Both the position numbers and the translations under genes were made by a program. The notes below the pieces were generated by a model. The model was not told where the DNA came from and ran no database searches. It saw only the letters and a list, made by a program, of their open reading frames with translations. Below, one piece after another: positions 4,827-63,985 of a stretch of DNA of 64,000 nucleotides (positions within the stretch are counted from its first letter, which is position 1; every line of letters starts with the position of its first letter). The stretch covers positions 62,001-126,000 of IMG/VR virus record IMGVR_UViG_3300027770_000025. The stretch is one strand, 5' to 3'.

Positions 4827-5453
4827 TTATTCGGATATTTCGAAAAACTTATCCTGGATAACCTCCACCTTATTCTTAAGGTTTTTCAGTCTGGAGATCT
4901 CTGATGGATTACCCGATGTATCTATGATTTTCCCGATATGATCGAGTAGCAGATAGCATAAACTTGCTAATTGTGATGTGAATTTACCATGCTCAGTGTA
5001 GTATGGAGCGTATGTGTCTTTGTTCTTTAGGTCTATTAAGTCAACTAAAAAATCTTCTAGATAAGATACAGTTTTTTCTGGGTTTCCTATAAAGATCTCT
5101 TCTCCAGTATCTTCATCCTCTTCAACTGATGCTTTTAAGATTTGATCCATTTCTGATATCATTCTTTCTAGCTCTGATTTGGCATCTATCATATTCCTTG
5201 ACATTTTTAATGCCTCCTCTTTATTGATCTTTGTGAGTGCGTCATAGGGAACAGATACGACTGAAGCCGGCCCGTTTATTAACTGAACCTTTGCCATACC
5301 ATTAGACAATGATAAGAATTTTGCTGGGCCTCTATATGATGTTACCCAATCGCCTTCCACGATATTAGGATCTGAATCGTCATGAAATTCAGATTCCGGA
5401 TCCTCCATAAATTTATCAAGATCGAAATCTTCGAAAAGTTTTACGTGCTTCAA
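4827..5453 (-). CDS. Hypothetical protein with capsid-targeting-like (CTS-like) N-terminal tag
   Basis: Starts MKHVKLFEDF. Confidence 0.7.
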   Translation of the reverse strand: MKHVKLFEDFDLDKFMEDPESEFHDDSDPNIVEGDWVTSYRGPAKFLSLSNGMAKVQLINGPASVVSVPYDALTKINKEEALKMSRNMIDAKSELERMISEMDQILKASVEEDEDTGEEIFIGNPEKTVSYLEDFLVDLIDLKNKDTYAPYYTEHGKFTSQLASLCYLLLDHIGKIIDTSGNPSEISRLKNLKNKVEVIQDKFFEISE

Positions 5454-5455
5454 AA

Positions 5456-5674
5456 TTACTTTTTGAATTCTTTCTTAGCTTCAGCGAAATCCTCTTCAGA
5501 TAGCTTCCAACCCTTTTTAACCTTTGAAAGATAAACCTGAGCACCCTTAAGAGTCGGTACTTTAGCCTCCTCGAAATATTGTTTAAGGTCTTTGTAAATT
5601 GCAGGACTGATCCCCTCTTTTTCTGTTATCTTTCCTTCTAATAGGAAGGTTTGGTATGATTTAATGTTTTCCAT
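5456..5674 (-). CDS. Small CTS-like-tagged hypothetical protein
   Basis: MENIKSYQTFLLE. Confidence 0.7.
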   Translation of the reverse strand: MENIKSYQTFLLEGKITEKEGISPAIYKDLKQYFEEAKVPTLKGAQVYLSKVKKGWKLSEEDFAEAKKEFKK

Positions 5675-5691
5675 TTGTTTGCTTAATTTAA

Positions 5692-5979
5692 TTATATATC
5701 TCTAATCTTCTCAACTATTACTGAAAGATCCCCTGTCCCTTTTATTAATCTGTGCCAGGTTCCCTTTGGTATTCTAATTGTTGATTTGATTTGTACTGGT
5801 AGCTTGTTATCAATCTGTAATTGCCAATCTGTTTCATGTACCCGATGCACTAATCTATCCTCTTCGTCCCAGTGCCACTTAAATTCTTCAGAACCACTAT
5901 ACTCAGAAAATTTCCTGATTACTGTTTCAGTTCTCCCTGAAGATACTAATGTCTCCTGGTATGGGTGGGATTTTACCAT
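5692..5979 (-). CDS. Cupin-like small phage protein
   Basis: WHWD...IPKGTWHRLIKG. Confidence 0.65.
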   Translation of the reverse strand: MVKSHPYQETLVSSGRTETVIRKFSEYSGSEEFKWHWDEEDRLVHRVHETDWQLQIDNKLPVQIKSTIRIPKGTWHRLIKGTGDLSVIVEKIRDI

Positions 5980-6560
5980 GGGTTGCTTGATTTTATGTTT
6001 AGTAGTTTTCTATATCTAGCAACGTTGCAAGACCACCATTTTGCTTTCCATCTCGGGCCTGGATTATCGCATTGCATTCTTTTCTGGAATGATCTGGCTT
6101 TTTTTGGATCATTGTTATTCACTCTCATGCCAGGTTGACCAAACCCGACCTTTACGACTTTGCCCCTATCATTCTTAGCGTATACAGCAAATTTTCTAGG
6201 ACCCCCTGGTGTTCTGAATGGCTTATTCAGATCCACCTTTCTGCCTTGGTATTCTGCCTCGTCTATCTCTTCATCACCTAGATAAAATGGAACATCTAAA
6301 AGAACTTCTTCCCCTTCATAAATTCCAGTTCTCCCCGCATCAGTACTTATCAGAATTAGATCATCTTCATCAAGATCTATTGATCCTGATTCCCAAAGTG
6401 TTCTAGCTTCATTTATTAATGCTAGCCAAGCATCAGACTCTATTCTATAAACGCTTTCCATTAACGGTAAACCGTTATCTATGTGGTACCTTAAACCTTC
6501 GCTTAGATTAGTGTTTATTTGGCTGTGTGTGATCGATTCAAACGTTTGTATATACTTCAC
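5973..6560 (-). CDS. Conserved large-phage protein, CTS-like tag, basic C-terminal domain
   Basis: MKYIQTFES; EAEYQGRKV..KPFRTPGGPRKFAVY..KVGFG..RSFQKRMQCD. Confidence 0.7.
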   Translation of the reverse strand: MKYIQTFESITHSQINTNLSEGLRYHIDNGLPLMESVYRIESDAWLALINEARTLWESGSIDLDEDDLILISTDAGRTGIYEGEEVLLDVPFYLGDEEIDEAEYQGRKVDLNKPFRTPGGPRKFAVYAKNDRGKVVKVGFGQPGMRVNNNDPKKARSFQKRMQCDNPGPRWKAKWWSCNVARYRKLLNIKSSNPW

Positions 6561-6693
6561 AGGGTATTTGTTTATTTGTTAGTAGCGAGCTTTAATAGCT
6601 GCTTATTATATATCAGAAACATTTGTCTAATCCGGATAAATTTTTTTTAGCCGTAACATAGTCCTATATTTGCACTTATAAAAGATAAAAAAC

Positions 6694-7173
6694 ATGGAAG
6701 AAGCAGTTAATTATTATTTGCACAGAATCAACACTGAGAAGAAAACAGGTTATATGTTTGGATTTATGCCGTTTCCCGCAGGGTCACCTGTGATGTTTAC
6801 CCTCGTGAATGTTGTTCTGTTTGCTCTTATCGGGATATACTTCAAAGCTCCTTTGTTAATGCTTCCACCCCTATTAACTATCGCATGGGAGCACTACATT
6901 ATATCATATCAAAGAAACATACTATTTGATGATTGTATGGCAAGCGAAGCTCTTATGCAGAACGAATTTAAAACCAAAGGTGCAGATCCTAATTTTCCAT
7001 TAGATCCTTTATACGTAACAAAAAGCGATCGTGAAGAAATATTCGATGAGTGTGAGGAATGGGTGGTAAGGGGTAGCTTAGTTGATAAACTAAAAAGCCA
7101 CCAAGCATTTATTTTAATACTGGTGGCTTCTTATATAGTAGCTTACTTCCTATTGAAGAATCTCGTTATTTAA
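6694..7173 (+). CDS. Membrane protein under an early-type promoter
   Basis: Hydrophobic segments; upstream ttttttttagccg...tatatttg. Confidence 0.65.
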   Translation: MEEAVNYYLHRINTEKKTGYMFGFMPFPAGSPVMFTLVNVVLFALIGIYFKAPLLMLPPLLTIAWEHYIISYQRNILFDDCMASEALMQNEFKTKGADPNFPLDPLYVTKSDREEIFDECEEWVVRGSLVDKLKSHQAFILILVASYIVAYFLLKNLVI

Positions 7174-7999
7174 TTCCTTTCTCTTTTAGGAATTTTTGAT
7201 ATGCTAATTTAACTTTTTCTACTGTTACGTTAAGATCTCTAGAAAGCCTAGAGATTGCAGCTTTTTGGGCTTTAGCTGTATCGTTTTTATAAATAGCTAC
7301 TGCCTTTAATGAGTTGATCAGCGAGTGAACCTTTTCGCCTAATCTAATTTGGTTAATCTTTTGCTCGAATCTTCTAGCAGCTGCTCTGGGACCTTCTGAA
7401 GCTGCAGCGTCTCTGTTCTTAGTGAACATAGTATTATCCTGGATAGCCTCACTAGCAAGTGCAGCAATTTCTCTAGGAGTTCTAGAGTTGAATTCGTTAA
7501 AGGCTTTAATTATTTTAGGGTAGATAGCTTCACCTGAAGTTTCACCCTCGCCACTAATTAGATTTCTGAATTTTTTAACAGTTCTTCGAACTGTCTCAGC
7601 AGAATCTAATCCAATTGCATCAGCAAATGCGGGACCTGTAATATTAAATACACCTTCTTTATCAATCTCTCCGAAATCTTTTATACCATCTATCATGATG
7701 GTGTATGTTCCGTAGTGGTTATCCTTAACCTTACCTAATGCTCTTAGATATAGAGCAGCCAATTGAGGTTTGCCCATGATCTGAAAATCTCTAGCAAGTG
7801 CAGCCTTTTCACCACTGGTTAATTCAGCATCATCATCTCCCCAATCATCTTCATCATCATCTTCATAAAGATCGCTTTCGAATACTGAGCTTAGATCTTC
7901 TTCCTGGTCGGCTTTCCAATCTTCATATATTGAGTCTGCGATTTCCATATCAGTTTGGTAATCCTCAGAGTATTGTTCAAATAGTTTAATGTTTTTCAT
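7166..7999 (-). CDS. CTS-like-tagged acidic hypothetical protein (start revised to 7999)
   Basis: MKNIKLFEQY; GATATATA ~25 nt upstream on minus strand. Confidence 0.7.
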   Translation of the reverse strand: MKNIKLFEQYSEDYQTDMEIADSIYEDWKADQEEDLSSVFESDLYEDDDEDDWGDDDAELTSGEKAALARDFQIMGKPQLAALYLRALGKVKDNHYGTYTIMIDGIKDFGEIDKEGVFNITGPAFADAIGLDSAETVRRTVKKFRNLISGEGETSGEAIYPKIIKAFNEFNSRTPREIAALASEAIQDNTMFTKNRDAAASEGPRAAARRFEQKINQIRLGEKVHSLINSLKAVAIYKNDTAKAQKAAISRLSRDLNVTVEKVKLAYQKFLKEKGIK

Positions 8000-8284: not shown

Positions 8285-9199
8285 ATGAGACAATTCAAAA
8301 TTACTGAGAGAATTACACCCAGGTCATCTAAATCGATCGCAGCTTACTATACAGAGGTTGAGAGGTATCCTATTATTACACCTCAGGAAGAGGTTGAACT
8401 AGCTAGGAGGATTCAAGAAGGTGATAAGGTAGCAAGGGATAAGCTGGCAACTGCCAATCTCAGATTTGTTATATCTGTTGCTAAGATGTATGGGGGAACT
8501 GGAGATCCTGAAATGTTTAATGATTTGATTTCTGCTGGAAATGTAGGTCTGATAGAGGCCGCAGAGAAATTTGACCCTTCAAGGGGTTTCAAATTTATAT
8601 CATTTGCTGTTTGGCATATTCGTAAGGAAATGCTTAAATACCTAGGTGATAATACCAGAATGGTTAGGATACCCCAAAATAAAACAAACGAGATCCGTGC
8701 TATAATGGAGGTCACGAATACTCTAACAATGAAATTGGGGAGAGAAGCCACAATAGAGGAAGTTATGGAGTATGTGGAGGATACTGGTGATATAAGGGTT
8801 AAGTCTTTATCAATTGACAGAGCAAATATCATGAGTGTAATGAATGCCGACAGAAAACCTGCTTCTCTAGATGCTCCGTTTAAGAATGACGGAAGTAACG
8901 ACAGCACAATGCACGATGTAATTGCAAGTGATCTAAGTAGTGCTGATAGCTTCAGTGTTGCAGAAAACATGGAAAAGATGACAAAGATGCTTACTGCTAC
9001 ACTAAGCCCAATAGCAAAAACCATAGTGTTAAGACGCCACGGAATTGGAGGTGGTTTTGAAGAAAGCTATGGTAGTATTGGACATGACTTAGGAATGTCA
9101 TCAGAAAGAATTCGCCAAATCTATATGAAATCACTTAAGATTATGGGCATCAGAGTTAGAAAATTAAAGTTACAGGGTGATGACATCTTCACTGATTAA
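8285..9199 (+). CDS. rpoD: Sigma-70 family factor, Bacteroidota primary-sigma-like (RpoD/SigA)
   Basis: MRQFKITERIT N-terminus typical of Bacteroidota sigma-A; NLRFVISVAK, GNVGLIEAAEKFDPSRGFKFISFAVW, ERIRQI. Confidence 0.9.
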   Translation: MRQFKITERITPRSSKSIAAYYTEVERYPIITPQEEVELARRIQEGDKVARDKLATANLRFVISVAKMYGGTGDPEMFNDLISAGNVGLIEAAEKFDPSRGFKFISFAVWHIRKEMLKYLGDNTRMVRIPQNKTNEIRAIMEVTNTLTMKLGREATIEEVMEYVEDTGDIRVKSLSIDRANIMSVMNADRKPASLDAPFKNDGSNDSTMHDVIASDLSSADSFSVAENMEKMTKMLTATLSPIAKTIVLRRHGIGGGFEESYGSIGHDLGMSSERIRQIYMKSLKIMGIRVRKLKLQGDDIFTD

Positions 9200-9249: not shown

Positions 9250-9570
9250 TTAGTCGTTGTTTCTAAATTTATGGGGAAATATCATACGCAGTTCATGTCC
9301 CATTGGGATATCTTTCTTTCTCATTCCAAACACCTTCTCTTCAGGACAGCATGATTTGCCGTCCATCTTGAATCCGTTATTACAACACCATGTCTCAATA
9401 GATCGCGTGTACTGCTGTCCAACAGAGTAAGGAAAGCTAACACCTGAATCGTTTACTAAGTCCTTTATACGGCCACCTAATACGGTAAACGTGATGGCTC
9501 TGTTTTGTCTTGAAGACAGTACAACTTCTCGCCCATCGTTATAAGCTTCAAATAGTTCTAGATTTTCCAT
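9250..9570 (-). CDS. CTS-like-tagged hypothetical protein
   Basis: MENLELFEAY; GATATATA upstream. Confidence 0.7.
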   Translation of the reverse strand: MENLELFEAYNDGREVVLSSRQNRAITFTVLGGRIKDLVNDSGVSFPYSVGQQYTRSIETWCCNNGFKMDGKSCCPEEKVFGMRKKDIPMGHELRMIFPHKFRNND

Positions 9571-9685
9571 AACTTATATATCTTTACCTGCTCCAGTAAG
9601 CATCACCCCAGTTATTGGATGTCCACCAATTCTCCCTGAGTGCAAATCCATGATCTGCTAGAGTGGGAAATGAGTTCCAGTAAAA

Positions 9686-10270
9686 TTAAAATTGGTTTTT
9701 GATCCGGTTAACCTTGAGAACAGCATCAAGCTTCTTCTTGTCCCAGTTAAGCAACCTGATGATACTATCATACATCTCCTGGTCGTCCTCGTACATCAGA
9801 AGTTTCTCGGGATCTTTCTCGATGGATCTGGCTAGGTACTTGATGTTAAAACTATTGTTCACGCTGCCCATCATGATCTCTTTTGGATTAGCAAAGAGCT
9901 TCTCAAGCATGTCAGACACCTTATAACAGTTTTCGTTGGACTCAGAATGGTAGCCATCGGCTCCCGATTTAATGCTGAATCCATGCCAGAATTGGTAATC
10001 AGCCTCTCCAATCTCCATGGCGTTGAACACGTGGGTCATTAGATCATCAACATCCTTAAACTCTGTTGGCTCATCCTCGTCATCGTCACCGAATCCTAGA
10101 TCCTCATTAACAGCCTGGGCAAAATCGTAAAACGTGTCGTAAATGCCGGCCAACGTGTAACTCATTGCCAAGTCCCTACTGCCTGCAGTGAGGCTGATCA
10201 CAAATCCCATCGGGCCGCTTTCTGCGCTCTCGTTCAGCAGATAGCTTTCATATTGAGTTAAGTTGTTCAT
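9686..10270 (-). CDS. CTS-like-tagged hypothetical protein
   Basis: MNNLTQYESYLLNE. Confidence 0.7.
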   Translation of the reverse strand: MNNLTQYESYLLNESAESGPMGFVISLTAGSRDLAMSYTLAGIYDTFYDFAQAVNEDLGFGDDDEDEPTEFKDVDDLMTHVFNAMEIGEADYQFWHGFSIKSGADGYHSESNENCYKVSDMLEKLFANPKEIMMGSVNNSFNIKYLARSIEKDPEKLLMYEDDQEMYDSIIRLLNWDKKKLDAVLKVNRIKNQF

Positions 10271-10716
10271 TATTCTCCTGTGGCCTTTCTGATTAGTAGC
10301 TCGCCTAGAACTTCGATCTCTCCAACCAGCTCCTGGAAGGGGACCTGCTCTATGTTCATTGAGCTCTTTGTTGCGTTGTATAGCTCATTAAGCTTGCCCT
10401 TATATTCGTTCTCGATCTGAGCAAAATCAAGTTCACCCTCAACACCCTGTGTGTAGTAGGGCAGCTTCACCTTGAAGTGATGGTAGGTGAGGAGTGCGTC
10501 TCCGCCCTTCTCTTTGGCACCCTGAGCTATCTTCGTGGCTCCAGCCAGCCTATTACTAGAGAACATCTCTAACGACTCTTGGGCTTCGAGCTCTTCGGCA
10601 ATCGGCACGCAGTTGGGCACGGTCTTGCCTTTCTTTGTTTTTGTGCCAATCTGTTTGTATCCGCTCCAGCATGGTGTGCTCTCATGCAGTTGCTCATATG
10701 TCTTTATCACCTTCAT
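10270..10716 (-). CDS. CTS-like-tagged protein with CWxGY..G.K.K.GK.VPNCVP phage motif
   Basis: MKVIKTYEQLHE; PCWSGYKQIGTKTKKGKTVPNCVP. Confidence 0.7.
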   Translation of the reverse strand: MKVIKTYEQLHESTPCWSGYKQIGTKTKKGKTVPNCVPIAEELEAQESLEMFSSNRLAGATKIAQGAKEKGGDALLTYHHFKVKLPYYTQGVEGELDFAQIENEYKGKLNELYNATKSSMNIEQVPFQELVGEIEVLGELLIRKATGE

Positions 10717-18349: not shown

Positions 18350-18777
18350 TTGTCAACGTTCCTGCGCCGCAACCTTGTTTGTCTTATGGGAATTGATATA
18401 TAGATTAATAAAAAATAAAAAAACTAATGAAAAATTTTAATTCTTTCGAAGATTTCAGTAACCAAAAAATAAACGAGGCAGCGGGCGTAGCTCCTTTTTA
18501 TGATAGCGTAAGCCAAATGAATGCTATATTAGCAAGTGATGATATTGCGGGTAAAATGGAAATGATGTTCATTGACAGTATGACCTATGCAGAGGATCTC
18601 ACATGGATTCTTAAAAGTAAAGATCGTCCCAGATTTATTTTAAAGGTAACTTTAATAGCTGAGGGCGGAGGATATGGTGCTAAAAAATATACTGTAGGTA
18701 AAGTAGTAAAAACTATTGCAACACCTTAATTGTATTGTCAACGTTCCTGCGCCGCAACCTTGTTTGTCTTATGGGAA
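18350..18777. mobile_element. Gene cassette bounded by a perfect 43-bp direct repeat
   Basis: ttgtcaacgttcctgcgccgcaaccttgtttgtcttatgggaa at 18350-18392 and 18735-18777. Confidence 0.6.
18427..18729 (+). CDS. CTS-like-tagged late protein inserted in the early region
   Basis: MKNFNSFEDF..INE; GATATATA at 18395; opposite strand to neighbours. Confidence 0.75.
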   Translation: MKNFNSFEDFSNQKINEAAGVAPFYDSVSQMNAILASDDIAGKMEMMFIDSMTYAEDLTWILKSKDRPRFILKVTLIAEGGGYGAKKYTVGKVVKTIATP

Positions 18778-37397: not shown

Positions 37398-37419
37398 GAT
37401 CATATAAAACGGGAGCAGC

Positions 37420-46061: not shown

Positions 46062-46304
46062 ATGAAAAATCTGATAAATTTTAAAAAATTTAGCTTAAAT
46101 GAGTCCGATCAAATCGAGAAATCTATTAATAACATTTCAGATTCTGCTCTTGATATTATTATAGATAAATGCGAGAGTGACGCACTTTTAGCTATAAAAG
46201 AAAATGTTCCTTATCTATATCAGGTGCTTTCAAAAAGATCACAATCTAGAGGAATAGACATTGATAAAATGGTTTCAGCAAAAGCTAAAATGAAATGGAT
46301 CTAG
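46062..46304 (+). CDS. Small CTS-like-tagged protein
   Basis: MKNLINFKKFSLNE. Confidence 0.7.
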   Translation: MKNLINFKKFSLNESDQIEKSINNISDSALDIIIDKCESDALLAIKENVPYLYQVLSKRSQSRGIDIDKMVSAKAKMKWI

Positions 46305-49323: not shown

Positions 49324-50205
49324 ATGAAGCACGTTACCTCATACAACCTATTTGAATCAGAATCAGAACCAATCAGAAAGGTGTTCACCAGAGAGCAGCT
49401 TAGCTGGCTAGATAAATGCACAGAGAACTCCTGGAAATACAATCCATCTACAGGGCTTGTTGATGTGGATGGGGATTTCTATTGTAGCGGCCAGAATCTA
49501 CAAGATTTTAAAGGTGTCAGATTCGGGACAGTTGGAAGGGGTTTCAGTTGTAAGAATAATCAGCTCACCACACTGGAGGGAGCACCTCAGAGTGTTGGTG
49601 GGGATTTCAATTGTTATAATAATCAGCTCACCACACTGGAGGGAGCACCTCAGAGTGTTGGCAATAGTTTCAATTGTGATGACAATCAGCTCACCACACT
49701 AGTGGGAGCACCTCAGAGCGTTGGTGGGGGTTTCAGTTGTAAGAATAATCAGCTCACAAGTCTAATGGGAGCACCTCAGAGTGTTGGTGAGGATTTCGAT
49801 TGTGAGAATAATCAGCTCACGAGTCTTGAGGGAGCACCTCAGGCTGTTAATGGGCGTTTCAGTTGTAGGGATAATGAGCTCACCACACTAGTGGGAGCAC
49901 CTCAGAAAGTTAATGGGGCTTTCAGTTGTGTTGGCAATCAGCTCACGAGTCTGGTGGGAGCACCTCAAACGGTTGGTGAGATTTTCTATTGTGGTGGTAA
50001 TCCAGTCTCTGAATCAACTTTAAAAGTCATCTTTGCGCTAATTCGAAAAGGAATTGCTTATCAGCAGGCTCTAGAACAATACTGGCCGGAGATGGAAGAT
50101 GAAGATAGGGCGTTAATGTATAAACAAATGCCTAATCTACCACCAGAAGAAACAAGAAAATACAAGGCGTTGGCTAACTACAATAACATAAAGGGTTATT
50201 TATAA
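49324..50205 (+). CDS. 22-aa LRR protein 3 (7 repeats), CTS-like tag (start revised)
   Basis: MKHVTSYNLFE; repeats. Confidence 0.9.
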   Translation: MKHVTSYNLFESESEPIRKVFTREQLSWLDKCTENSWKYNPSTGLVDVDGDFYCSGQNLQDFKGVRFGTVGRGFSCKNNQLTTLEGAPQSVGGDFNCYNNQLTTLEGAPQSVGNSFNCDDNQLTTLVGAPQSVGGGFSCKNNQLTSLMGAPQSVGEDFDCENNQLTSLEGAPQAVNGRFSCRDNELTTLVGAPQKVNGAFSCVGNQLTSLVGAPQTVGEIFYCGGNPVSESTLKVIFALIRKGIAYQQALEQYWPEMEDEDRALMYKQMPNLPPEETRKYKALANYNNIKGYL

Positions 50206-50960
50206 TGAAGTACATTAAGCCATATCAGATATTCGAAGCCAATGCGGCAGCACCAGCAGCACTTACTGAGGAGCAGATCGAGTGGTTGGATAAATGTGCT
50301 AATCGAACATGGTCACTAAATCCACAGACTGGACTGGTTGATGTGGATTTGGATTTCAATTGTACCGGACAGGGACTTTCAGATTTTAAAGGAGTTAAGT
50401 TCGGGGTGGTTAATAGAAGTTTCTTTTGTCCCCGCAATTCCCTTACTTCCCTTATAGGAGCACCACAACGGGTTGGCGGGGATTTATATTGTAACGAAAA
50501 TGCACTCACCTCACTTGAGGGAGCACCACAACGGGTTGGAATGAGCTTAAATTGTAACAACAATTCACTCACCTCACTTATGGGAGCACCACGAGAGGTT
50601 GGCGGGAGTTTCTATTGTCACACCAATCTTCTAACCTCATTAGAGGGAGCACCCCAACGGGTTGGTGGGGATTTCACTTGTACTAACAATCTTCTCACCT
50701 CACTTGAGGGAGCACCAAAAAGTGTTTTCAGGGATTTCGGTTGTCATGGCAATCCAGTCTCAGAAAAAACATTAAAGAAGATATATGACAAAATGCAAAA
50801 GGGTACCAGTTATCTGGCTGCTGTGGAGAGTCTTTGGAGCGAGATTCCTCAGGACGATCAGGTTCTGCTTTATGCTGATGATTTCAAATGGGTAAGCCCA
50901 GAGCAGGGTAGAGGACTAGTAGCACTAAGGGCTTATCAGGCTCTAAGAGGCATGCTTTAG
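50205..50960 (+). CDS. 22-aa LRR protein 4 (5 repeats), CTS-like tag
   Basis: MKYIKPYQIFEA; repeats. Confidence 0.9.
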   Translation: MKYIKPYQIFEANAAAPAALTEEQIEWLDKCANRTWSLNPQTGLVDVDLDFNCTGQGLSDFKGVKFGVVNRSFFCPRNSLTSLIGAPQRVGGDLYCNENALTSLEGAPQRVGMSLNCNNNSLTSLMGAPREVGGSFYCHTNLLTSLEGAPQRVGGDFTCTNNLLTSLEGAPKSVFRDFGCHGNPVSEKTLKKIYDKMQKGTSYLAAVESLWSEIPQDDQVLLYADDFKWVSPEQGRGLVALRAYQALRGML

Positions 50961-50975
50961 CGGATATATAGAGTT

Positions 50976-52496
50976 ATGAAAAGAATAAAAAGTTTTAATG
51001 ATTTTATTAATAGTAATGTTAACGAAGGTGTTTTTAGTAAAATAGCTAGGAGCTTTACCGGAGCCGATAGAAAAGAAATAAATGCTCAGGTAAAGCTATT
51101 AAGAGACACTTACGAGGGATTAAATGACGGAGAAAAGAAAGAATTTTCCGATAGACTACAGCAAAAAATAGATAAAAATAATCAAGGAGGCTCGAGCATA
51201 GCTATTAGGTTACGTGAGAAATTTAAAACCATACTCGATTCGGGGGATTGGTATTCAGAACTAGGAAAAATATCTTCGGATGATGCCGAATATCTAATTA
51301 TGTATATTAGCTCTCTCTATCAATACATAATTAGAGAATATGATAATATAAAAGAAGTAGTTCAAAAAAATAAACTAACTAAAGAGTTAGAAAAATATAA
51401 TGAAGATGTCGCTAAATATAACAAAATTTCTTCATTTATAAAAGATGATTTTGAATCAAAAAAAGAAGAGTTTAATAAATTCTTTAGTTGTATCGACGGG
51501 AGTCCTAATTTTAAGAACAGAGACACATATGCTTTTATAGATAAATTTAATGCTTCTGATAGAAACAAAAAAATATTAGAAACAGACATATTTAAGAGAT
51601 TTAAGGCTTATACTATTGAGTTAAATCAGAAATTAAAAAGCTTTGAATGGAACTCGGGAGAATTTGTAAATACCATTGAACTTTATGACAAAGTCCAAAG
51701 TAGATACGAAGAACTCTTCAATAAGTCACAGGGTATGTCTATAAGACCAGATAAACCCAACTTTCAAATTTCGGGATGGGGTATGGACTTATTAACATGG
51801 GCTGAGGAGAATCTGAAAGATAAAACAATATCAGAGATGGCATTGGATATGACAATGAATAATTTGGATTATGCGAATGGAATGAAATGTGTTGAAATAG
51901 GAACCGAAGATACTAAAGTGGCCATAAAAAATGAAGATGGATTAATTGGTGGAAATATTGTTTATTCTGGGCAAAACTTTAATAATCTTAATTTAGAAAA
52001 TGTATCAGACCTTATCAATAAAGAAGGAGGATATAAGGAAAGTGTTTCGGGAAAAGTTATGTATGTAACTAATAATATACCATATGCTTTCTACTATTGC
52101 TATTTGAGATTTGGATTAGATGCTGATAGACCTAGCCCCAATTTATCTAGAAATTTATTTCCAACAGTTTATAAAATAACTCTAAAAAAAGGAACTAAAT
52201 TTTTTCATAAAAGTGATACCTATATAGATCAAGAAGAATATAAATTAGCTAGTATTTGTGGAATGTCTGGTTATCACTCGGGAAATGAAATAGTGAATGG
52301 CCAGAGTATTGAAGTGTCATTAATTACCAGCGATTGTATTGATACAATAGAGGCAATTAAACCAGGAGAGTTAATTTCATATTTAGAAAGTCCAGAATTT
52401 ACTAAAGATAATCAACTTATAAGTGGAGAAAGATATAAAATAGACCAGAACGAAATAAACTGGTATAAGGAATTAGTTTCACGGTATGGGATATGA
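50976..52496 (+). CDS. Large CTS-like-tagged protein; possible C-terminal ADP-ribosyltransferase-like fold
   Basis: MKRIKSFNDF..VNE; VYSG...MYVTNN..YAFYY...VYKITL...E. Confidence 0.55.
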   Translation: MKRIKSFNDFINSNVNEGVFSKIARSFTGADRKEINAQVKLLRDTYEGLNDGEKKEFSDRLQQKIDKNNQGGSSIAIRLREKFKTILDSGDWYSELGKISSDDAEYLIMYISSLYQYIIREYDNIKEVVQKNKLTKELEKYNEDVAKYNKISSFIKDDFESKKEEFNKFFSCIDGSPNFKNRDTYAFIDKFNASDRNKKILETDIFKRFKAYTIELNQKLKSFEWNSGEFVNTIELYDKVQSRYEELFNKSQGMSIRPDKPNFQISGWGMDLLTWAEENLKDKTISEMALDMTMNNLDYANGMKCVEIGTEDTKVAIKNEDGLIGGNIVYSGQNFNNLNLENVSDLINKEGGYKESVSGKVMYVTNNIPYAFYYCYLRFGLDADRPSPNLSRNLFPTVYKITLKKGTKFFHKSDTYIDQEEYKLASICGMSGYHSGNEIVNGQSIEVSLITSDCIDTIEAIKPGELISYLESPEFTKDNQLISGERYKIDQNEINWYKELVSRYGI

Positions 52497-52584: not shown

Positions 52585-52911
52585 ATGAAACACATAAAAT
52601 TATTTGAAAACTACTTTGAATCTGATAATTCATCACCTGGGTTTATTAACGAATCTTTAGAAAAGAAGATTAGTAACGGTAAAATAACAGCTACGATAAA
52701 AAATAAATTAGGTCTTGAAGTTTCTTCAGGGAATTTTGTTTTGCAAATTGGTAGCGGTACAGGTCTTATTATAAAACATCCGGATTTTGATAAAAATAAA
52801 AAACAAATAAAAATTTCTATGGATGGTCCAGAGGGTTTTCGTGACATGTCAGGTATCCCAAATAAAGGTACCTGGTCAATTAATGGAACATATTTAACCC
52901 TCAAAGAATAA
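52585..52911 (+). CDS. CTS-like-tagged small protein
   Basis: MKHIKLFENY. Confidence 0.7.
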   Translation: MKHIKLFENYFESDNSSPGFINESLEKKISNGKITATIKNKLGLEVSSGNFVLQIGSGTGLIIKHPDFDKNKKQIKISMDGPEGFRDMSGIPNKGTWSINGTYLTLKE

Positions 52912-52956: not shown

Positions 52957-53412
52957 TTATTTCTCGTCCAGAGGGTAGATGTCTTCGATCCAGCTAGGTA
53001 CTTCATCCAAAACCTCAATCTCATCAGAATACCCATATTTTCTATAATCCTTTAAGGGAAGCACAGAGTACTTTTCTTTTTTATCTTTAGTAAATTGTTT
53101 GTGTGCAAAATCTAGAACCAAATCATCAACCAGTATTGCTATGTGTGCATCTTTAGCCTTTTCTGTTTCTGGAAAGTAAACTATTCTAACAGGTGTTCTG
53201 TTATTTTCACACCATTGATAAAACTCCTGAACATACCAAGCACAGTTTCCTTTCTTCTTATCGAACTCTTTACCAACTCTTAGATCGTAGTTCTTTCCCA
53301 GATCTCTTAGAAATTGATCCGCAATATTTTCCACTCCTGGTTTGCTAACTCTAAAGCTGGTAGGAACCATTTGATTCTCGTAATCATCAAATGTTCTGAT
53401 AAATTTCATCAT
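52957..53412 (-). CDS. CTS-like-tagged protein with putative Cys-His-Asp (papain/transglutaminase-like) triad
   Basis: GNCAWY...AHIAIL...VLDF. Confidence 0.55.
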   Translation of the reverse strand: MMKFIRTFDDYENQMVPTSFRVSKPGVENIADQFLRDLGKNYDLRVGKEFDKKKGNCAWYVQEFYQWCENNRTPVRIVYFPETEKAKDAHIAILVDDLVLDFAHKQFTKDKKEKYSVLPLKDYRKYGYSDEIEVLDEVPSWIEDIYPLDEK

Positions 53413-53565: not shown

Positions 53566-53916
53566 ATGATGAACATAAAAATGTACGAAAACTTCGTAAA
53601 CGAATCTCCAGAGATGACTAACGTTCCCCAGCTAAGAACTCAAACATCTGATGTTGCCGTGCCTAGTAATGACAATCAGGCAATAACAAGAGAGCAGGAA
53701 GCTATGAGAGCAAGACTTGAATCTGATGTTAAAAGAATGTACCCTAATTTATCAATTAGACACACACAGGACGGACAATCAGGTGTAGCAATAGATAATA
53801 ATGTAATTTACGCTTCGGATCATTACGAGGCTTTTAACGCATTTCTATTTGGCCTTGTAATGGCTAAGATGCAAGAGGGAAGAGGTGGAAACGATAGAAT
53901 GCCAACTAGATATTAA
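53566..53916 (+). CDS. CTS-like-tagged protein (start revised)
   Basis: MMNIKMYENFVNE. Confidence 0.7.
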   Translation: MMNIKMYENFVNESPEMTNVPQLRTQTSDVAVPSNDNQAITREQEAMRARLESDVKRMYPNLSIRHTQDGQSGVAIDNNVIYASDHYEAFNAFLFGLVMAKMQEGRGGNDRMPTRY

Positions 53917-54763: not shown

Positions 54764-55837
54764 ATGAGAATTTTGCCATATGAACTTTTCGGATCTTATA
54801 GTAAAAGAAATCTTTTATTTGAGGAATTTATTCCTTCAGGAAACGAAAAATGGCCTAGCAACTGGAAAGAAATGCCAGAGTGGAAAACCTTACAGGATCT
54901 AGGATTTATTGAGACAACTACCGATAGGCAGACAAGACTTAACACTATTATGTTGAAAAACACCCTGATAAATTATCTTTATCCTGCTGGAGTAGTTCTT
55001 CAAGCATCAGGATACATCAGGGATAAAGGAGTTGATTCGGGATACATTAGCAATAAATATGACAATCTCTCTGATATGTTAAATTATCTTATTGTGAGAT
55101 ATTCTAAGGAATCAGAAAGGAATTCAGTAAGTGAAAGAACAGGACCTTTAACTCAAGAACAGATAAAGGCTATAAACGTATTCACACAAGCACCATGGAG
55201 GTGGAACACTAAAACAGAATCTGTTGATGTTGACGGTAAGGTTAGAGTAATGGATTCAAATGGTTTAAATAAAGATGTAATCGGAACTTTTAAATTCGGA
55301 AAGGTAAAAGGAGAATTTGAATTACGAGGCAGTCATTTTGATCTTGACACGTTAGAAAATTTTGCACCAGATTATGTCGGAAAGAATGTGATGATGTTTA
55401 GTACAGATCTGAAAGACATGAAAGGATTTCCTTCAATAGTAAAAGGAAGAATATGGATAAGTGGAACGCCAGGTTCTTTAGAAGGTATACCTATGGAAGC
55501 AGAAGAATTATCGACTGATTATTTTATTGCCAGACCCTGGAATATCAAGAATGCTTTAATCATTCTTGATAGAGGGTCAGTAGATGTGGAAGACACAAGA
55601 GCAGGCGTGGAAGCGATTAAAAGACATTGGGACGATAATCCAGATAGAAGTAAAAAAGCTAGTCAGCTGGCTTCAACAGTTTTAAGCGATGATATAATCG
55701 ATGAATATTTTAAAAATAATCCACTTAAGCTATATATTCTTGACCCTTACCCTGAAATTAAAGCCGGTGTTCTAAAAAGAACAGGTATGAAGGATCTTTC
55801 TGGTGTAGGTAAAGGATTACAGGGAGGATGGTTCTAA
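54764..55837 (+). CDS. Tagged protein containing a degenerate copy of the LRR N-cap and diverged repeats
   Basis: LTQEQI...W.WN..T.SVDVDG...FGKVKGEF...LDTLENFAP.YVG..MKGFP..SLEGIP. Confidence 0.7.
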   Translation: MRILPYELFGSYSKRNLLFEEFIPSGNEKWPSNWKEMPEWKTLQDLGFIETTTDRQTRLNTIMLKNTLINYLYPAGVVLQASGYIRDKGVDSGYISNKYDNLSDMLNYLIVRYSKESERNSVSERTGPLTQEQIKAINVFTQAPWRWNTKTESVDVDGKVRVMDSNGLNKDVIGTFKFGKVKGEFELRGSHFDLDTLENFAPDYVGKNVMMFSTDLKDMKGFPSIVKGRIWISGTPGSLEGIPMEAEELSTDYFIARPWNIKNALIILDRGSVDVEDTRAGVEAIKRHWDDNPDRSKKASQLASTVLSDDIIDEYFKNNPLKLYILDPYPEIKAGVLKRTGMKDLSGVGKGLQGGWF

Positions 55838-55854: not shown

Positions 55855-56256
55855 ATGGAGCACATATTAGAGTACGAACAATTTTCAGGGGAATCTTTAA
55901 ATGAAGCAGAAATCATTTATGATGGTGTTAAAATAACATCGGCAAACGACAAAACTGGTAGAGTAATTTTATCTTATGGATTGACAAAGATATTCTATAA
56001 AGTTAAAGCAAAAGTACAAAAGATCGGTATAACATGGTACGATGGACCTATTTCAGTGGTAGCTGCTTGGCAGGACGATAAAAAACAATGTTGGGTTAAG
56101 GATAACACAGGTAAGTTATTTGAGTTAAATCCAGATACATTAAAGATCCTTGCTGCAAAAGCAAAAGCAAAAGCACCGCTAATAGCTTTTACTGGAACTG
56201 GTGAGGTCAAAGGAGTAGAAGGAACATATAACGCTACCTTGACTAAGGTTGCATAA
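55855..56256 (+). CDS. CTS-like-tagged protein (start revised)
   Basis: MEHILEYEQF..LNE. Confidence 0.7.
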   Translation: MEHILEYEQFSGESLNEAEIIYDGVKITSANDKTGRVILSYGLTKIFYKVKAKVQKIGITWYDGPISVVAAWQDDKKQCWVKDNTGKLFELNPDTLKILAAKAKAKAPLIAFTGTGEVKGVEGTYNATLTKVA

Positions 56257-56286: not shown

Positions 56287-56910
56287 ATGGAACACATTAA
56301 ATTATTTGAAAATTACATATTTGAAGCTGCAAACGCAGAGACACTGGAGTCACCAGGGATTGCTAAGGGTGTAGATACAGAAGAGTATTTAGCTAAAGTT
56401 AGGGGTGAAGAAGCTAAAGATAGAGATAAAAACTCGGAGTATTTTGCAGCTTGTAAACAGTTTGCCACTAGCTTTGTTGGTAAATCAATGAAAATTCCTA
56501 ATTACGGGATGATTCCTAAATCAACTTTTACCATGGAAGGATTTGCAGATTGTTGCTTCTCTATTATGAGCATGGCTAAAGGATCTGGTGTTTGGAATAA
56601 CGCAGTTAGAAAAGAAGAATCTAAGCTGGAGACCGGATATTTCCCTACAGCTTTTGTAGCTGGATATGTTACTAAGGATAAAGGATTTGCTGATATTGAT
56701 TTCAATGCAGATATAAACGGACCTAAGAAAGCCCTTGCTCCTGCTTTATCCGGATATTATTGCTATTTAAACGTCCACAAAAGAATCGGTACAGATATTG
56801 ATTTGAAACCAGCACCTGAGAAATTCTCTATGCAAGAGCTGGTTGCTCTGGATCCACAATGGAAGGTATATTTTCAGGGATTGGTTAATTTAGCAACCAA
56901 ATTTCAATAA
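56287..56910 (+). CDS. CTS-like-tagged protein (start revised)
   Basis: MEHIKLFENYIFE. Confidence 0.7.
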   Translation: MEHIKLFENYIFEAANAETLESPGIAKGVDTEEYLAKVRGEEAKDRDKNSEYFAACKQFATSFVGKSMKIPNYGMIPKSTFTMEGFADCCFSIMSMAKGSGVWNNAVRKEESKLETGYFPTAFVAGYVTKDKGFADIDFNADINGPKKALAPALSGYYCYLNVHKRIGTDIDLKPAPEKFSMQELVALDPQWKVYFQGLVNLATKFQ

Positions 56911-57891: not shown

Positions 57892-58572
57892 CTATAACAT
57901 ATTTCCATCCTCGTCAAAAGTGTGACCCCCTGATCTTAGATCCTCAGCTATTGTTTCGTCTGAAGTTAGCTCATCATGGTATGTTTCAAGACTATTATAA
58001 AGGCCTTTGCTTTTTTCTCTTGCCCAATCCGTAATTATAGGATCTATTCTTTCACACACATCATTAACATCAATCTCTATAATCATACCCAGACCTAGAT
58101 CAAGTTCGATCTCCTCGTCACCGTCAACCTCAACGTTTGCTGAGATCGTGTTGTGGTGATAGTAGTTTCTATCATTTCTTTGTATAGTGATGTAGATATT
58201 TTCTGCAATTGAAGCTAAAGCCGTATCAAATTTTCTTGGTGTCTTATCACCTAGACCTACTGATGCTGGTGTTATTCCAAGCTCTTTTAGAAATAATTCA
58301 TTGTCTTTCACTTTTCCTGTAAAAGAAGCACCGTCACCTTGTGAATAGAATCCAGAGAACTGGCAATCAATATCGGCCATACCAATCGCTTCCATTTCTT
58401 CAGTGAATCCCTCTATGATAGGCTCCCACCAATCGTATGATTCTATGTTATAATCTCTATTTCTATCTATGGCATTCTTCTTAGCCTCCGGAGATAGTTC
58501 ATCGAATGTATACGATTTCTCGTCTTCTGATTCAGACAGATTGGAAAATTGAGAGTATTTAAGTATCTTCAT
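57892..58572 (-). CDS. CTS-like-tagged acidic protein; apparent paralogue of 33361..33960
   Basis: MKILKYSQF..LSE; YTFDELSPEAK; FSGFYSQGDGASF; FDEDGN. Confidence 0.75.
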   Translation of the reverse strand: MKILKYSQFSNLSESEDEKSYTFDELSPEAKKNAIDRNRDYNIESYDWWEPIIEGFTEEMEAIGMADIDCQFSGFYSQGDGASFTGKVKDNELFLKELGITPASVGLGDKTPRKFDTALASIAENIYITIQRNDRNYYHHNTISANVEVDGDEEIELDLGLGMIIEIDVNDVCERIDPIITDWAREKSKGLYNSLETYHDELTSDETIAEDLRSGGHTFDEDGNML

Positions 58573-59386: not shown

Positions 59387-59962
59387 ATGAAAAATCTTAA
59401 GCCATTTGCCATATTCGAGGCTTCTTCATATAGTTACACAATCGACGATGTAAAAAGGTTGCCGTTATTTGGGCTATTAGAAAAACTTGGTTTTTATGAT
59501 TCAACTACCGATAGAATATGGAAAAATAGTAATATGAGAATTTATAACGATCTTCTTTATATGAATGAACCTTCTGAATGTATAACTATCTATGGCAATG
59601 GTCCGGTTAGAAAAACTATTAAAGGTATGTTTGGTACCGGTGCACCCCATATACTAAAGAACTTCAATTCTAATATCTCTTCATTAACAGACTGGAATAT
59701 TAGATTTGCTTATCTCGTTAATTGGGCTAGAAAAAGATATGCTAAACAGGGATTAGCTTTTGATCTATCTAAAATTCCTAATATAGAAAGTTATTTAGAA
59801 TCTATCTATAAAGAAGATATTCCAATCTTTATGGGCATTTACAAAGATTTAGATCAAAGATCTAAAGAATTGTTTCTGAAAAAAATAGGGAAGACCGAGG
59901 ATGATCTAAATAAATTGGTTGCTCTTTATAATAAAGCCACTAACATTATGAAATGGACTTAA
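59387..59962 (+). CDS. CTS-like-tagged hypothetical protein
   Basis: MKNLKPFAIFE; GATATATA at ~59373. Confidence 0.7.
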   Translation: MKNLKPFAIFEASSYSYTIDDVKRLPLFGLLEKLGFYDSTTDRIWKNSNMRIYNDLLYMNEPSECITIYGNGPVRKTIKGMFGTGAPHILKNFNSNISSLTDWNIRFAYLVNWARKRYAKQGLAFDLSKIPNIESYLESIYKEDIPIFMGIYKDLDQRSKELFLKKIGKTEDDLNKLVALYNKATNIMKWT

Positions 59963-61936: not shown

Positions 61937-61945
61937 ATTCTATTT

Positions 61946-62281
61946 TTAATTGTTTTCTTTTTTTAACTCATCCCACACCACTTTTGTTTCATAAAAGCAT
62001 GTGAGTTTAATTCCGCCTTCAACAAATTCCATTGCTTCGACTATAAGTCCTTCCCATTCTGTCTCATAGTAACCCATATCAGCTCCTGGTTGATTTTCAT
62101 GTTCGACTGTGGTGTAAGGTCCTCCCGGAGGATCAAACATTATAAGCTTATTGTCATCGGTGACTGAAGTCCGATAAAAATCTGCAGAGTATCCTGACAT
62201 TATAAATTCGGTCAGGGATATTCTTTCAACTACTATCTTATCTGAATGGCGATTTATATAAATTGATTCTTTAATATTCAT
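61946..62281 (-). CDS. Hypothetical protein
   Basis: FDPPGGPY motif. Confidence 0.65.
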   Translation of the reverse strand: MNIKESIYINRHSDKIVVERISLTEFIMSGYSADFYRTSVTDDNKLIMFDPPGGPYTTVEHENQPGADMGYYETEWEGLIVEAMEFVEGGIKLTCFYETKVVWDELKKENN

Positions 62282-62416
62282 ATTCTACTTGGATATTTAT
62301 ATTTTTAGATTATAGACGCAAACTTAATTAATAATCCCGGTATATAAAAATAAATTATTGGTTTATCCCGGATCCTTTATCATAAAATAGTGTATAACCC
62401 CTATAAATTAATTAAA

Positions 62417-63001
62417 ATGAAGGAGAATCAGGAGTCACGTTTAATCTCGATAATAGGTGCACCGAGTTCAGGTAAGTCCACGCTTGCAACATCTATACAT
62501 CACGGATTAAAGATATCAAAAAGAAATTCTGTGTTTGTTGGGGAAGCAGCAACGGACTATATTGCAGAGTGGGGGATACCAAATACACCCACCGATCAAA
62601 TCATCATATTCTATAAGCAACTCGGTAGGGAAAGAATGTATGTTGGATCTAAAGAGTTTATCATCTGTGATTCTAGCTCTATTCTAAACTACTTCTATTT
62701 CAGATCTTTATTTAGCCCTGTTTTAAGCTTAAAGGATATAGCAACAATAAATCATTTACAGAAGGAAATTCTAAAGTCCTTAAGTCAGTGGCATAAAATA
62801 TATTATGTCCCGCCGTTTCTTGATGAAGAAGATCAGAACGATGGTATAAGATACCATAACAAAGAGCAGATAATTAAATTGGATTTGATAATAAAGAATT
62901 ATCTTGAACTTGAAAGAATTCCGTATATCGATCTTTCATCAATACCAATGGAAGAAAGAGATAAATGGATTTTGAATGATCTTACTAAACCACGTAAGTA
63001 A
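62417..63001 (+). CDS. NadR/AAA_28-like P-loop kinase (start revised)
   Basis: IIGAPSSGKST, E.A, IICDS, DGIR. Confidence 0.75.
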   Translation: MKENQESRLISIIGAPSSGKSTLATSIHHGLKISKRNSVFVGEAATDYIAEWGIPNTPTDQIIIFYKQLGRERMYVGSKEFIICDSSSILNYFYFRSLFSPVLSLKDIATINHLQKEILKSLSQWHKIYYVPPFLDEEDQNDGIRYHNKEQIIKLDLIIKNYLELERIPYIDLSSIPMEERDKWILNDLTKPRK

Positions 63002-63445
63002 TTAGAAAACTGGTATAATAGCCCAAGGTTCTGCAGGGAGCCAATATTGTGCATCATCTATAACCTTTTGCATTTGCTGTACATTTATAGTATTTCTCCA
63101 GTTAGGAGTTTTATTTTTATTTAACCCTATATTAAACCCTGTCATACCAACCCATTTTTTGAGATACTCTTTTGTTGGCATAACTTTTTTATAAGATAAT
63201 TTTCCATCCTTATATCCCATAATATAAATCTCTTCATACAAATTAGTCATATAAACAGGTATCCCTGGCTTATTTCCGACCTTCATTCTGGATAATTCCT
63301 GAACATATTTAACCGGCATAAGAAAAACATAGCTTTTATCTTCTCTATCTTTCTGAGGATTACCCTTAATAAAAACCCATCCTCCCTGTGTCCATGGTAG
63401 GGTGCCTTCATTTAGCCAGATTTGATATTCTAGTAAGTTTTCCAC
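63002..63445 (-). CDS. CTS-like-tagged hypothetical protein
   Basis: ENLLEYQIWLNE; GATATATA-like motif upstream. Confidence 0.65.
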   Translation of the reverse strand: MENLLEYQIWLNEGTLPWTQGGWVFIKGNPQKDREDKSYVFLMPVKYVQELSRMKVGNKPGIPVYMTNLYEEIYIMGYKDGKLSYKKVMPTKEYLKKWVGMTGFNIGLNKNKTPNWRNTINVQQMQKVIDDAQYWLPAEPWAIIPVF

Positions 63446-63514
63446 ACCTTATATATCAAATCTATAAGATATATATAATGTAAAAAAAAACAGATATATA
63501 AAAATAAATACAAA

Positions 63515-63985
63515 ATGGAAAACATATTAGAATTTGAAACGTTTAATCCTCAAGCTACAGGATCTGCTCCAGCAGGAGTTGAAGTAGCACCTCCGGTTTT
63601 TGGTAATATAGATTTTACCATGTCGGGAGTATCTGATGATGCTATGAAGCTTATTGCAGGACTTATGGCTCAATCGGTATTAGCATCAGGTGAAGCTGAA
63701 AGAATAGCTAGAATGGCAGATACAGACCCAGCTTCGGCAGCGTCTTATCTACAAAAGAAGGTGGAAGGGATCTTAATTGGAGTTCCGGGATTAGCTCCTA
63801 CATTTATTCAGTCTATGAAATCTCAATCTTCAAATATTTCTAAGATTATGGTTCAAACAATTCCAGGATTACTTGGTAGCTTAACAGATAAAGATATTGA
63901 AGCAAACGAATTAAAACCAGATACATCTAAAGCATCTTTCCTAAGTAAACTTAGCGGATTTTTTGCTGACAATCAGGGAGCATAA
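63515..63985 (+). CDS. CTS-like-tagged hypothetical protein
   Basis: MENILEFETF; GATATATA at ~63493. Confidence 0.7.
   Translation: MENILEFETFNPQATGSAPAGVEVAPPVFGNIDFTMSGVSDDAMKLIAGLMAQSVLASGEAERIARMADTDPASAASYLQKKVEGILIGVPGLAPTFIQSMKSQSSNISKIMVQTIPGLLGSLTDKDIEANELKPDTSKASFLSKLSGFFADNQGA

Follow-up and report, generated by a model that had tools for sequence, protein, structure and literature searches.

A short N-terminal tag resembling the T4 capsid targeting sequence recurs on a third of the genes in a segment of an uncultured lake phage genome

Introduction

Why should some three dozen proteins of one phage, most of them with dissimilar bodies, begin with variants of the same short peptide? 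The question is raised by a 64,000-nucleotide (nt) stretch of DNA (the window), which covers positions 62,001 to 126,000 of IMG/VR record IMGVR_UViG_3300027770_000025, i.e., of the 348,582-bp freshwater metagenome contig Ga0209086_10000002 from an uncultured lake phage; adding 62,000 to a window position gives the position in the record. A first-pass annotation of the window had noticed about 35 proteins with such a tag between positions 4827 and 63985 and had likened it to the capsid targeting sequence (CTS) that internal proteins of T4 carry. We find 36, with the first and the last at exactly those positions, and the reading best supported is that the tag is a T4-type capsid targeting propeptide. 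We regard this as probable, though well short of certain, because the tag sequence, the clade of phages in which it occurs, the protease family of those phages and the shared (I/L)NE site all agree; packaging, cleavage and injection of the tagged proteins would follow from it.

Results

A tag conserved as a peptide

The tag, M-[K/R/E]-x-[I/L/V]-K-x-[F/Y]-E-x-[F/Y], opens 36 of the 110 window genes (about one third), which were called by codon-usage score and counted after correction of their starts. Among these 36, position 2 is K, E or R in 32, position 4 is I, L, V or F in 35, position 5 is K in 21, position 7 is F or Y in 32, position 8 is E or Q in 20 and position 10 is F or Y in 28. Under a strict pattern (M, a charged or polar residue at 2, I/V/L/F at 4, F/Y at 7 and an aromatic or aliphatic residue at 10), 31 of the 110 N-termini match as against 0.27 expected, judged by the internal positions of those proteins. 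Not one of 353 internal methionines matches, and 2000 shuffles of the N-termini gave a mean of 0.30 and a maximum of 3, so that the shuffling check proposed with the first-pass annotation comes down on the side of a real motif. With a weight matrix, 31 strong tags score 10.7-24.4 and the untagged genes at most 7.1; five tags, at 20832, 40225, 40561, 53566 and 54764, are weak or register-shifted. The tripeptide [LIVMF]NE, which had been remarked upon as (L/I/V)NE near many tags, does keep that company: within residues 6-30 there are 12 such sites in the 36 tagged proteins versus three in the 74 untagged ones. The generic [LIVM]xE is found there in 34 of 36 tagged and 31 of 74 untagged proteins, a count that speaks to the presence of a site and not to its cleavage.

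Selection is on the peptide and not on the DNA or the mRNA. The information in the tag is concentrated at codon positions 1 and 2, with little at position 3; its lysine codons divide AAA:AAG as 10:10 and 14:7, isoleucine uses three codons and leucine five, all at about their genome-wide usage, and the substitutions seen (F/Y, I/L/V, K/R) are conservative for the peptide. Since selection acts on the peptide, a pure translation signal or a recombination cassette is rejected as an explanation of the tag.

Two promoter classes

The promoter-like motif RATATATAR (e.g., at 50963..50971 on the plus strand) has 34 sites in the window as against 7.3 expected, a number that no shuffle reached. Of the 36 tagged genes, 27 have RATATATA in the 80 nt upstream, as against only four of the 74 untagged ones (Fisher p 5e-14), and the nine tagged genes without it mostly stand directly behind another tagged gene. 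Twelve of the sites (such as 9574-9582, 36288-36296, 39430-39438 and 50963-50971) end 4-6 nt before the start codon; hence, many of the tagged mRNAs may be leaderless or nearly so, and if RATATATA is a -10-like element, those 12 transcripts start at or adjoining the start codon. Transcript starts were not found in the metatranscriptome contigs, all of which are small fragments. In front of several tagged genes stand a hairpin with a T-run and then the RATATATA motif, so that these genes look like self-contained cassettes.

A different, AACCAA-type motif, TTTG...TAACCAAnTAAA, lies upstream of 27 of the 74 untagged genes versus two of the 36 tagged ones, which agrees with the earlier remark that the genes with early promoters are nearly devoid of the tag. 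It is a repeated early-type regulatory cassette, recalling the mobile promoter cassettes of T4-type phages, and in about 27 small genes on the minus strand between 12280 and 34000 it ends about 10 nt before the ATG. A full-length phage sigma-70 family factor (8285..9199, plus strand; Pfam Sigma70 r1.2, r2, r3 and r4) could be the factor that recognizes one of these classes of promoter.

An add-on to protein bodies

When the bodies of the tagged proteins (residues 17 to end) were compared by BLASTP, 30 were singletons and the other six (37420, 42203, 47490, 49324, 50205 and 54764) formed a single family with leucine-rich-repeat (LRR)-like matches. The earlier description of the bodies as unrelated is therefore largely right, the family of six being the exception. 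With 30 of 36 singletons and with domains as distinct as SLT, CHAP, PG_binding_1, LRR and phrog_5162, the idea that the tagged proteins form one diverged paralogous family is ruled out. Within the repeat family, two genes have a near-identical 30-nt leader, GATATATAGAnCAnATAAAACGGGAGCAGC (37390-37419 and 42173-42202); this doubling, and the truncation of the copy at 37420-37593 to 57 amino acids (aa), speak for recent duplication and decay in this part of the genome.

The tag is an add-on. The phrog_5162 protein at 57892-58572 has homologs in 214 phage records, most of the listed ones aligning with it only from about residue 20 and, thus, lacking the tag. SLT, CHAP or peptidoglycan-binding domains occur on three tagged proteins, and the canonical endolysin cassette is untagged. 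In the family of a tagged 506-aa protein (50976-52496; 32 homologs, 32-84% identical), M1 and R3 are nearly invariant and F10 and E17 (in VNE|G) invariant. Its AlphaFold2 (AF2) model, with a mean confidence (pLDDT) of 83.8, has low confidence over residues 1-20 and a short helix at 7-11, as would be expected of a folded body with a flexible leader. The N-terminal half of this protein is long and helical, and the C-terminal domain is mixed alpha/beta with the invariant motifs Y-A-F-Y-Y, R-F, H-S-G-N and Q-S-V-E. Protein-atlas leads and weak Foldseek matches to PARP13, MbcT and tankyrase (E ~0.7) make an ADP-ribosyltransferase-like C-terminal domain a weak lead, which neither a profile search of the PDB nor hhalign against T4 Alt confirmed.

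The determinants of the T4 capsid targeting sequence

In T4 (NC_000866), IPII and IPIII start with MKTYQEFIAE followed by A, and IPI starts with MKTFKEF and has ITE|A at residue 19. For packaging, the initial 10 residues of IPIII are enough; mutagenesis assigns targeting chiefly to residues 4 and 7 and processing to 8 and 10, and varied internal proteins of other T-evens bear CTS-like leaders (PMC9026906). The window tag fits these targeting positions, with I/L/V/F at position 4 in 35 and F/Y at position 7 in 32 of 36 cases. These are its best-kept positions, followed by the [LIV]-x-E, so that the proposed likeness to the T4 CTS extends to the very residues that matter in IPIII.

The tag in other phages

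We scanned IMG/VR with a degenerate DNA pattern for the tag and obtained at least 120 stretches; counts of loci given below are among the 120 listed. Many of the listed contigs are multi-tagged, locus L085 having 15 tandem tagged genes in 15 kb. The listed matches comprise 316 distinct tagged open reading frames (ORFs) with the consensus MK[H/Y]IK[L/T]FExF[I/L/V]NE, in which E13 is present in 53% and LNE, INE and VNE are commonest at 11-13. Of 136 tags with [LIVMF]xE at these positions, 47% have A or S after the E; residues 11-13 and the residue following them lay outside the search pattern. The tag persists in phages of 22-46% GC with different upstream DNA and among homologs at 32-45% identity. 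Cellular genomes rarely have it: the pattern matched 98 stretches in 596 Gb from bacteria and archaea, almost all single and mostly in metagenome-assembled genomes. The tag strings were not found in the literature, nor did we find a paper linking the CTS to metagenomic huge phages.

T4 core genes (gp43, gp41, UvsX, UvsW, gp46/47, gp18, gp20 and gp21) are present in 36 of the 120 listed loci. A gp20-like portal is found in five, three of which also have a gp21-like protease; portal and capsid genes are present among L115, L038, L031, L032 and L007. In the L038 protease, which has 5396 homologs, a domain of the T4 prohead protease family (PF03420) is fused to PF20034. The L038 and L115 proteases both retain the N-terminal LLI-x-E of T4, which PMC9026906 counts as fitting the cleavage logo of gp21, and the capsid proteins of L115 and L038 start with MATLINE|AE and MYANQLINE|AE and so share the ending of the tags. 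A tagged 110-aa gene of L115 sits between portal and protease, the slot of the T4 core genes for gp67 and gp68. The portal, protease, capsid, tail-fibre-like and lysis genes themselves are untagged; hence, the tag is not general to structural or lysis genes. Among deposited phages, the nearest portals and proteases are those of huge phages (LR756500-LR756504 and LR745206) and Lak phages, and the huge phage LR756504.1 holds one tagged protein letter-for-letter. Between its protease and capsid genes, L038 has a tagged 379-aa protein (L038:8471-9610) with EWYLNGQLHRTDGPA repeats, MORN-like by eye.

The source contig beyond the window

The contig was read over 44-184 kb of its 348.6 kb. It has 35 strong tags in record 44-164.5 kb and none in 164-184 kb, and because 31 of the 35 fall inside the window, the latter is an island of tagged genes. 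Outside it are a tagged CHAP-domain protein, a tagged peptidoglycan-binding protein and further variant leaders, as well as tail-fibre-like genes, T4-like RNA ligases and a Dda-like helicase. An untagged lysis cassette (L236:25-1884; record 162.7-164.5 kb) consists, in order, of an endolysin (PG_binding_1 plus a GH19-like domain), a small protein that is a possible holin, a lipoprotein and a small membrane protein, with tail-collar and laminin-G genes after it.

Just outside the window, a gene pair (L129:13838-15257; record 129.3-130.8 kb) encodes a 182-aa gp21-like protein, 30% identical to the N-domain of the L038 protease (E 2e-5), and a 296-aa protein matching Pfam Gp23 at 5.7e-10 over only the middle of the model. 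The pair sits among non-structural genes with no RATATATA motif upstream. It may represent a decoy or a remnant, and SPN3US likewise has a diverged protease paralog (PMC5694885); the pair points to a T4-type head ancestry of the source genome. The contig is absent from the best 120 of the 5396 homologs of the L038 protease.

Discussion

Weighing the alternatives

Could the tag be doing something other than loading the head? It might dock proteins on another site of the virion, such as the outside of the capsid or head and tail appendages, so that they are displayed and not injected. The LRR-like repeat family and the cell-wall-binding proteins would suit this, and tagged proteins are mostly acidic, unlike the DNA-embedded internal proteins of T4. 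We nevertheless hold it unlikely, for the tag matches the CTS of precisely those internal proteins, including the terminal protease site, a tag that is cut off would be no lasting surface anchor, and the tagged gene of L115 occupies a prohead-core slot. Delivery to an intracellular site unrelated to the capsid (a membrane, a replication or assembly compartment, or a chaperone) could draw on the alternation of hydrophobic residues (4, 7 and 10/11) and intervening K/E, a pattern that would form an amphipathic helix, and on the short helix at 7-11 behind a flexible N-terminus in the AF2 model of the 506-aa protein. However, it leaves the specific likeness to the T4 CTS unexplained, and the genuine lipoproteins of the window (48582 and, likewise, 31886) have ordinary signal peptides and no tag, which makes this explanation quite improbable. 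A Sec or lipoprotein signal in particular is ruled out for the tag, which has charges at 2, 5 and 8, no hydrophobic run or h-region and no lipobox.

We think it very unlikely that the tag shortens the life of late proteins, as an N-terminal degradation or timing signal recognized by phage ClpP and a host unfoldase or by some other protease. ClpXP degrons that start with Met-basic-hydrophobic do exist at N-termini, and the window encodes a strong ClpP homolog (61253-61936, 1.5e-56) and SmpB; yet ClpP adjoins SmpB, which suggests a role in trans-translation instead, and many tag contigs show no ClpP at the sampled loci. Such a signal would also leave unexplained both the conserved [LIV]NE|A/S end, common to the capsid N-termini, and the restriction of the tag to T4-like phages. 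Hardly credible, finally, is a functionless peptide whose conservation is a by-product at the nucleic-acid level, whether of a mobile cassette of promoter and first codons or of a start enhancer for leaderless mRNAs. In its favor, 12 RATATATA motifs come to within 4-6 nt of the start codon, codons 7 and 8 are TTT and GAA slightly more often than expected, and some paralogs have near-identical leader DNA. Against it stand the low information of third codon positions, the roughly genome-wide frequencies of the K, I and L codons, the conservative exchanges (F/Y, I/L/V, K/R) and the retention of the tag at 32-45% identity and 22-46% GC in spite of different upstream DNA.

A capsid targeting propeptide accommodates these observations better, but several findings weigh against it. 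A third of the genes in 64 kb is far more than any known CTS set, six of the 36 carriers are paralogs, and one or two of the tags, those of the pterin dehydratase at 43096 and of 54764, may be coincidental. Most tagged proteins lack a Pfam or PHROG match, leaving the function of almost all the cargo unread; they are mostly acidic (median isoelectric point 5.5), unlike T4 IPII and IPIII. The RATATATA class would be 'late' only by analogy with the T4 late promoter, TATAAATA. Whether the tagged bodies avoid internal cleavage sites is not clear, the picture being mixed: the generic [LIVM]xE is somewhat low in them, with observed-to-expected ratios of 0.86 versus 1.21 in the window and 0.97 versus 1.16 in IMG/VR, while [LIV]NE is enriched in the IMG/VR tagged bodies (1.64). 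A head module with portal, true capsid and functional protease was not found in record 44-184 kb, and the 182-aa gp21-like protein has GELVDV where its relatives have GELDHP, so that the His of GELxHP is missing. Among cultured relatives, Tenacibaculum phage PTm1 has no tags in its first 99 kb, and cultured phages gave no matches to the small tagged protein of L038 or to its protease-scaffold fusion.

A plausible mechanism and what it would mean

On the capsid targeting reading, we advance the following course of events. The tagged genes would be transcribed late from the RATATATA promoters, singly or in short cassettes. Residues 1-10/17 of the tag, with the hydrophobic residue at 4 and the aromatic ones at 7 and 10, would dock each protein onto the scaffolding core of the prohead, where a Glu-specific prohead protease of the gp21 family would remove the tag after [L/I/V]-x-E, in many cases an (I/L/V)NE with A, S or G behind it. 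Once matured, the protein would remain in the head with the DNA and enter the next host alongside it. The phage would, in effect, package and inject dozens of effectors, as had been proposed at the outset.

The principle is already known from T4; what is new is the form of the tag, its spread in uncultured T4-like phages including huge ones and the size of the repertoire. If the tag is a CTS, dozens of ORFans per genome become a defined class, located in the head and first into the host, a class in which anti-restriction and host-takeover factors are to be expected, as with T4 IPI* and Alt. CTS loading would then be ancestral and widespread in T4-like phages instead of a peculiarity of the T-evens, and the huge phages would have scaled it up by an order of magnitude. 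Somewhat more doubtful, though by no means far-fetched, is the broader proposal that the 13-residue tag serves as an address label, readable from sequence, across a large and entirely uncultured T4-like branch that includes the largest phage genomes. Were that so, sequence alone could yield the list of proteins that thousands of phages package and inject, and the islands of terminator, promoter and tag (35.7-64 kb of the window) would be plug-in sites for new cargo, with anti-defence and host-takeover proteins as the candidates. In practical terms, it would be a key with which to search metagenomes for injected proteins and, where phages of this clade are to be engineered, a candidate packaging tag.

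The tagged genes along the window

At the left end, on the minus strand, are 4827..5453 (208 aa, TTG start, MKHVKLFEDF, matrix score 19.8, no Pfam or PHROG match), 5456..5674 (72 aa, MENIKSYQTF with LLE at 11-13, the putative late motif RATATATA, hereafter late motif, 18 nt upstream), 5973..6560 (195 aa, GTG start, MKYIQTFESI; its body matches phrog_7595 and it has tagged homologs in L113 and L119) and 7166..7999 (277 aa, MKNIKLFEQY, score 23.0). Between two of these lies an untagged 95-aa gene (5692-5979) without a Pfam or PHROG match, whose product is the most widely shared of the window in tag-bearing IMG/VR loci (43-53%, ~17 loci). The same strand has 9250..9570 (106 aa, MENLELFEAY, late motif ending 4 nt before the ATG) and 9686..10270 (194 aa, MNNLTQYESYLLNE), the latter directly downstream of 10270..10716 (148 aa, MKVIKTYEQL), which matches several PHROGs of unknown function. 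The early-type block contains a lone putatively late gene at 18427..18729 (plus strand, 100 aa, MKNFNSFEDFSNQKINE). In the ORF at 20832..21458 (minus strand, 208 aa), which has two late motifs upstream, the tag MKTFKDFIYEKINE (starting MKTFKDFIYE) is in the T4 register. The product of 27027..27899 (plus strand, 290 aa) has MDKIKSFKEFTLNE followed by a Gly-rich hydrophobic stretch and an SLT lytic transglycosylase domain (Pfam SLT 1.4e-6; phrog_4067 transglycosylase).

Farther along, 35741..36283 (180 aa, MKNLKSFKLYE, late motif ending 5 nt before the ATG), 37717..39426 (569 aa, MKYIKIFEAFILGGVNE, no family match) and 39569..40150 (193 aa, MRHIKSYNLYE) are on the minus strand. The plus strand has the truncated repeat-family copy at 37420..37593 (57 aa, MRHIKPYQIFE), 40225..40554 (109 aa, register +1, MERIIKTYESF, weak matrix score), the weakly tagged and P-loop kinase-like 40561..41400 (279 aa, MARVLNFDQYVSLSE; Pfam CPT 9e-4, under the cut-off), 41397..42119 (240 aa, MRHIKLFESF, with an L065 homolog 67% identical) and the repeat-family member 42203..43081 (292 aa, MKYIKPYQIFE|AS). 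The clearest doubtful tag, MRHLQQYRGFE, belongs to the 103-aa pterin-4a-carbinolamine dehydratase at 43096..43407 (minus strand), which matches Pfam at 1.7e-25 from residue 11 and has no late motif.

Thereafter, the plus strand predominates, with 43524..44000 (158 aa, MKYLKLFENFILNE), 46062..46304 (80 aa, MKNLINFKKFSLNE), 47023..47472 (149 aa) and 47490..48548 (352 aa, repeat family, LRR_4 match), the last two sharing the leader MKNLKTYRMFE. Further repeat-family members are 49324..50205 (293 aa, MKHVTSYNLFE, preceded by a hairpin and T-run and then a late motif), 50205..50960 (251 aa, MKYIKPYQIFE) and the distant and weakly tagged 54764..55837 (357 aa, MRILPYELF). Also on this strand are the 506-aa protein discussed above (50976..52496, MKRIKSFNDFINSNVNE|G, 32 aligned homologs), 52585..52911 (108 aa, MKHIKLFENY), 53566..53916 (116 aa, MMNIKMYENFVNE), 55855..56256 (133 aa from an internal start, MEHILEYEQFSGESLNE), 56287..56910 (207 aa, MEHIKLFENYIFE), 59387..59962 (191 aa, MKNLKPFAIFE|AS) and 63515..63985 (156 aa, MENILEFETF). 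On the minus strand lie 52957..53412 (151 aa, MMKFIRTFDDYE, late motif ending 5 nt before the ATG), 57892..58572 (226 aa, MKILKYSQFSNLSE, body phrog_5162 at 3.7e-37) and 63002..63445 (147 aa, GTG start, MENLLEYQIWLNE).

Other genes and relatives of the phage

The window is AT-rich (33-42% GC). In a nucleotide comparison with 50,697 phage records, its sole match was a 68%-identical sugar-modification gene of Flavobacterium phages and a 595-kb uncultured phage, and against T4 proteins (106 kb of T4 compared) the sole match was a small 31.1-like gene at 23086. The host is probably a member of the Bacteroidota, to go by relatives and composition. Auxiliary genes include a sugar cluster of aminotransferase, acetyltransferase and methyltransferase genes (1454-4775), with further sugar genes on both flanks of the window, and genes for a radical SAM enzyme, an FMN-reductase-like protein (marginally under the Pfam cut-off) and a UDP-glucose dehydrogenase (44668-45486, 53919-54758 and 60395-61246). 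A tRNA-Met (58689-58766), the SmpB homolog (59959-60384) and the ClpP homolog (61253-61936) lie close together; this clustering indicates that the phage carries parts of the machinery for trans-translation and degradation of tagged proteins, and ARAGORN found no transfer-messenger RNA (tmRNA) in the window.

Comparison with known systems

The nearest parallel is the CTS of T4 itself (Mullaney and Black 1996; PMC9026906, PMC3012670). Both are short MK leaders in which residue 4 is hydrophobic or aromatic and residue 7 is F, both end in [I/L]-x-E before a small residue, both stand on unrelated proteins and both occur in phages with homologs of gp20, gp21 and gp23; the window leader closest to MKTFKEF and MKTYQEFIAE of T4 is MKTFKDFIYE of gene 20832. 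The usual tag here differs in its length of 13-17 residues, in a third aromatic at 10 and in the preferred (I/L/V)NE end. Whereas T4 has four known carriers (IPI, IPII, IPIII and Alt), here there are 36 candidates in 64 kb, with mostly acidic cargo of up to 569 aa, and tag-bearing relatives have their protease joined to a scaffold-like domain (PF03420+PF20034).

The internal-protein locus of T2, T6 and related T-evens (PMC9026906) shows the same combination of a conserved leader and interchangeable, fast-evolving cargo. There, the cargo consists of varied basic proteins and is interpreted as anti-defence (IPI* against GmrSD), and the locus comprises a few genes per genome in enterobacterial phages, as opposed to an island of dozens in an uncultured phage.

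In scale, the closer comparison is with phiKZ, 201phi2-1 and SPN3US (PMC5694885, PMC10052503), large phages whose heads contain about 50 proteins, many of which are ejected, with processing after Glu by a gp21-related protease and with a diverged protease paralog, as in the source contig. They differ in their propeptides, which often exceed 100 residues and share no short tag, in the cleavage motif A/S/G-x-E and in belonging to another clade (Chimalliviridae and relatives). The ejection proteins of SPN3US, reported at >40 MDa (PMC7411985), dwarf the tagged set of the window, one copy of every member of which amounts to 0.8 MDa in total. More distantly, encapsulin cargo-loading peptides and the Dar head proteins of P1 likewise bring diverse cargo into an HK97-fold shell, by a short terminal peptide or a dedicated pathway; neither has sequence similarity to the window tag, the encapsulin tags being C-terminal and uncleaved, and P1 Dar loading needing DarA/Hdf with no common tag.

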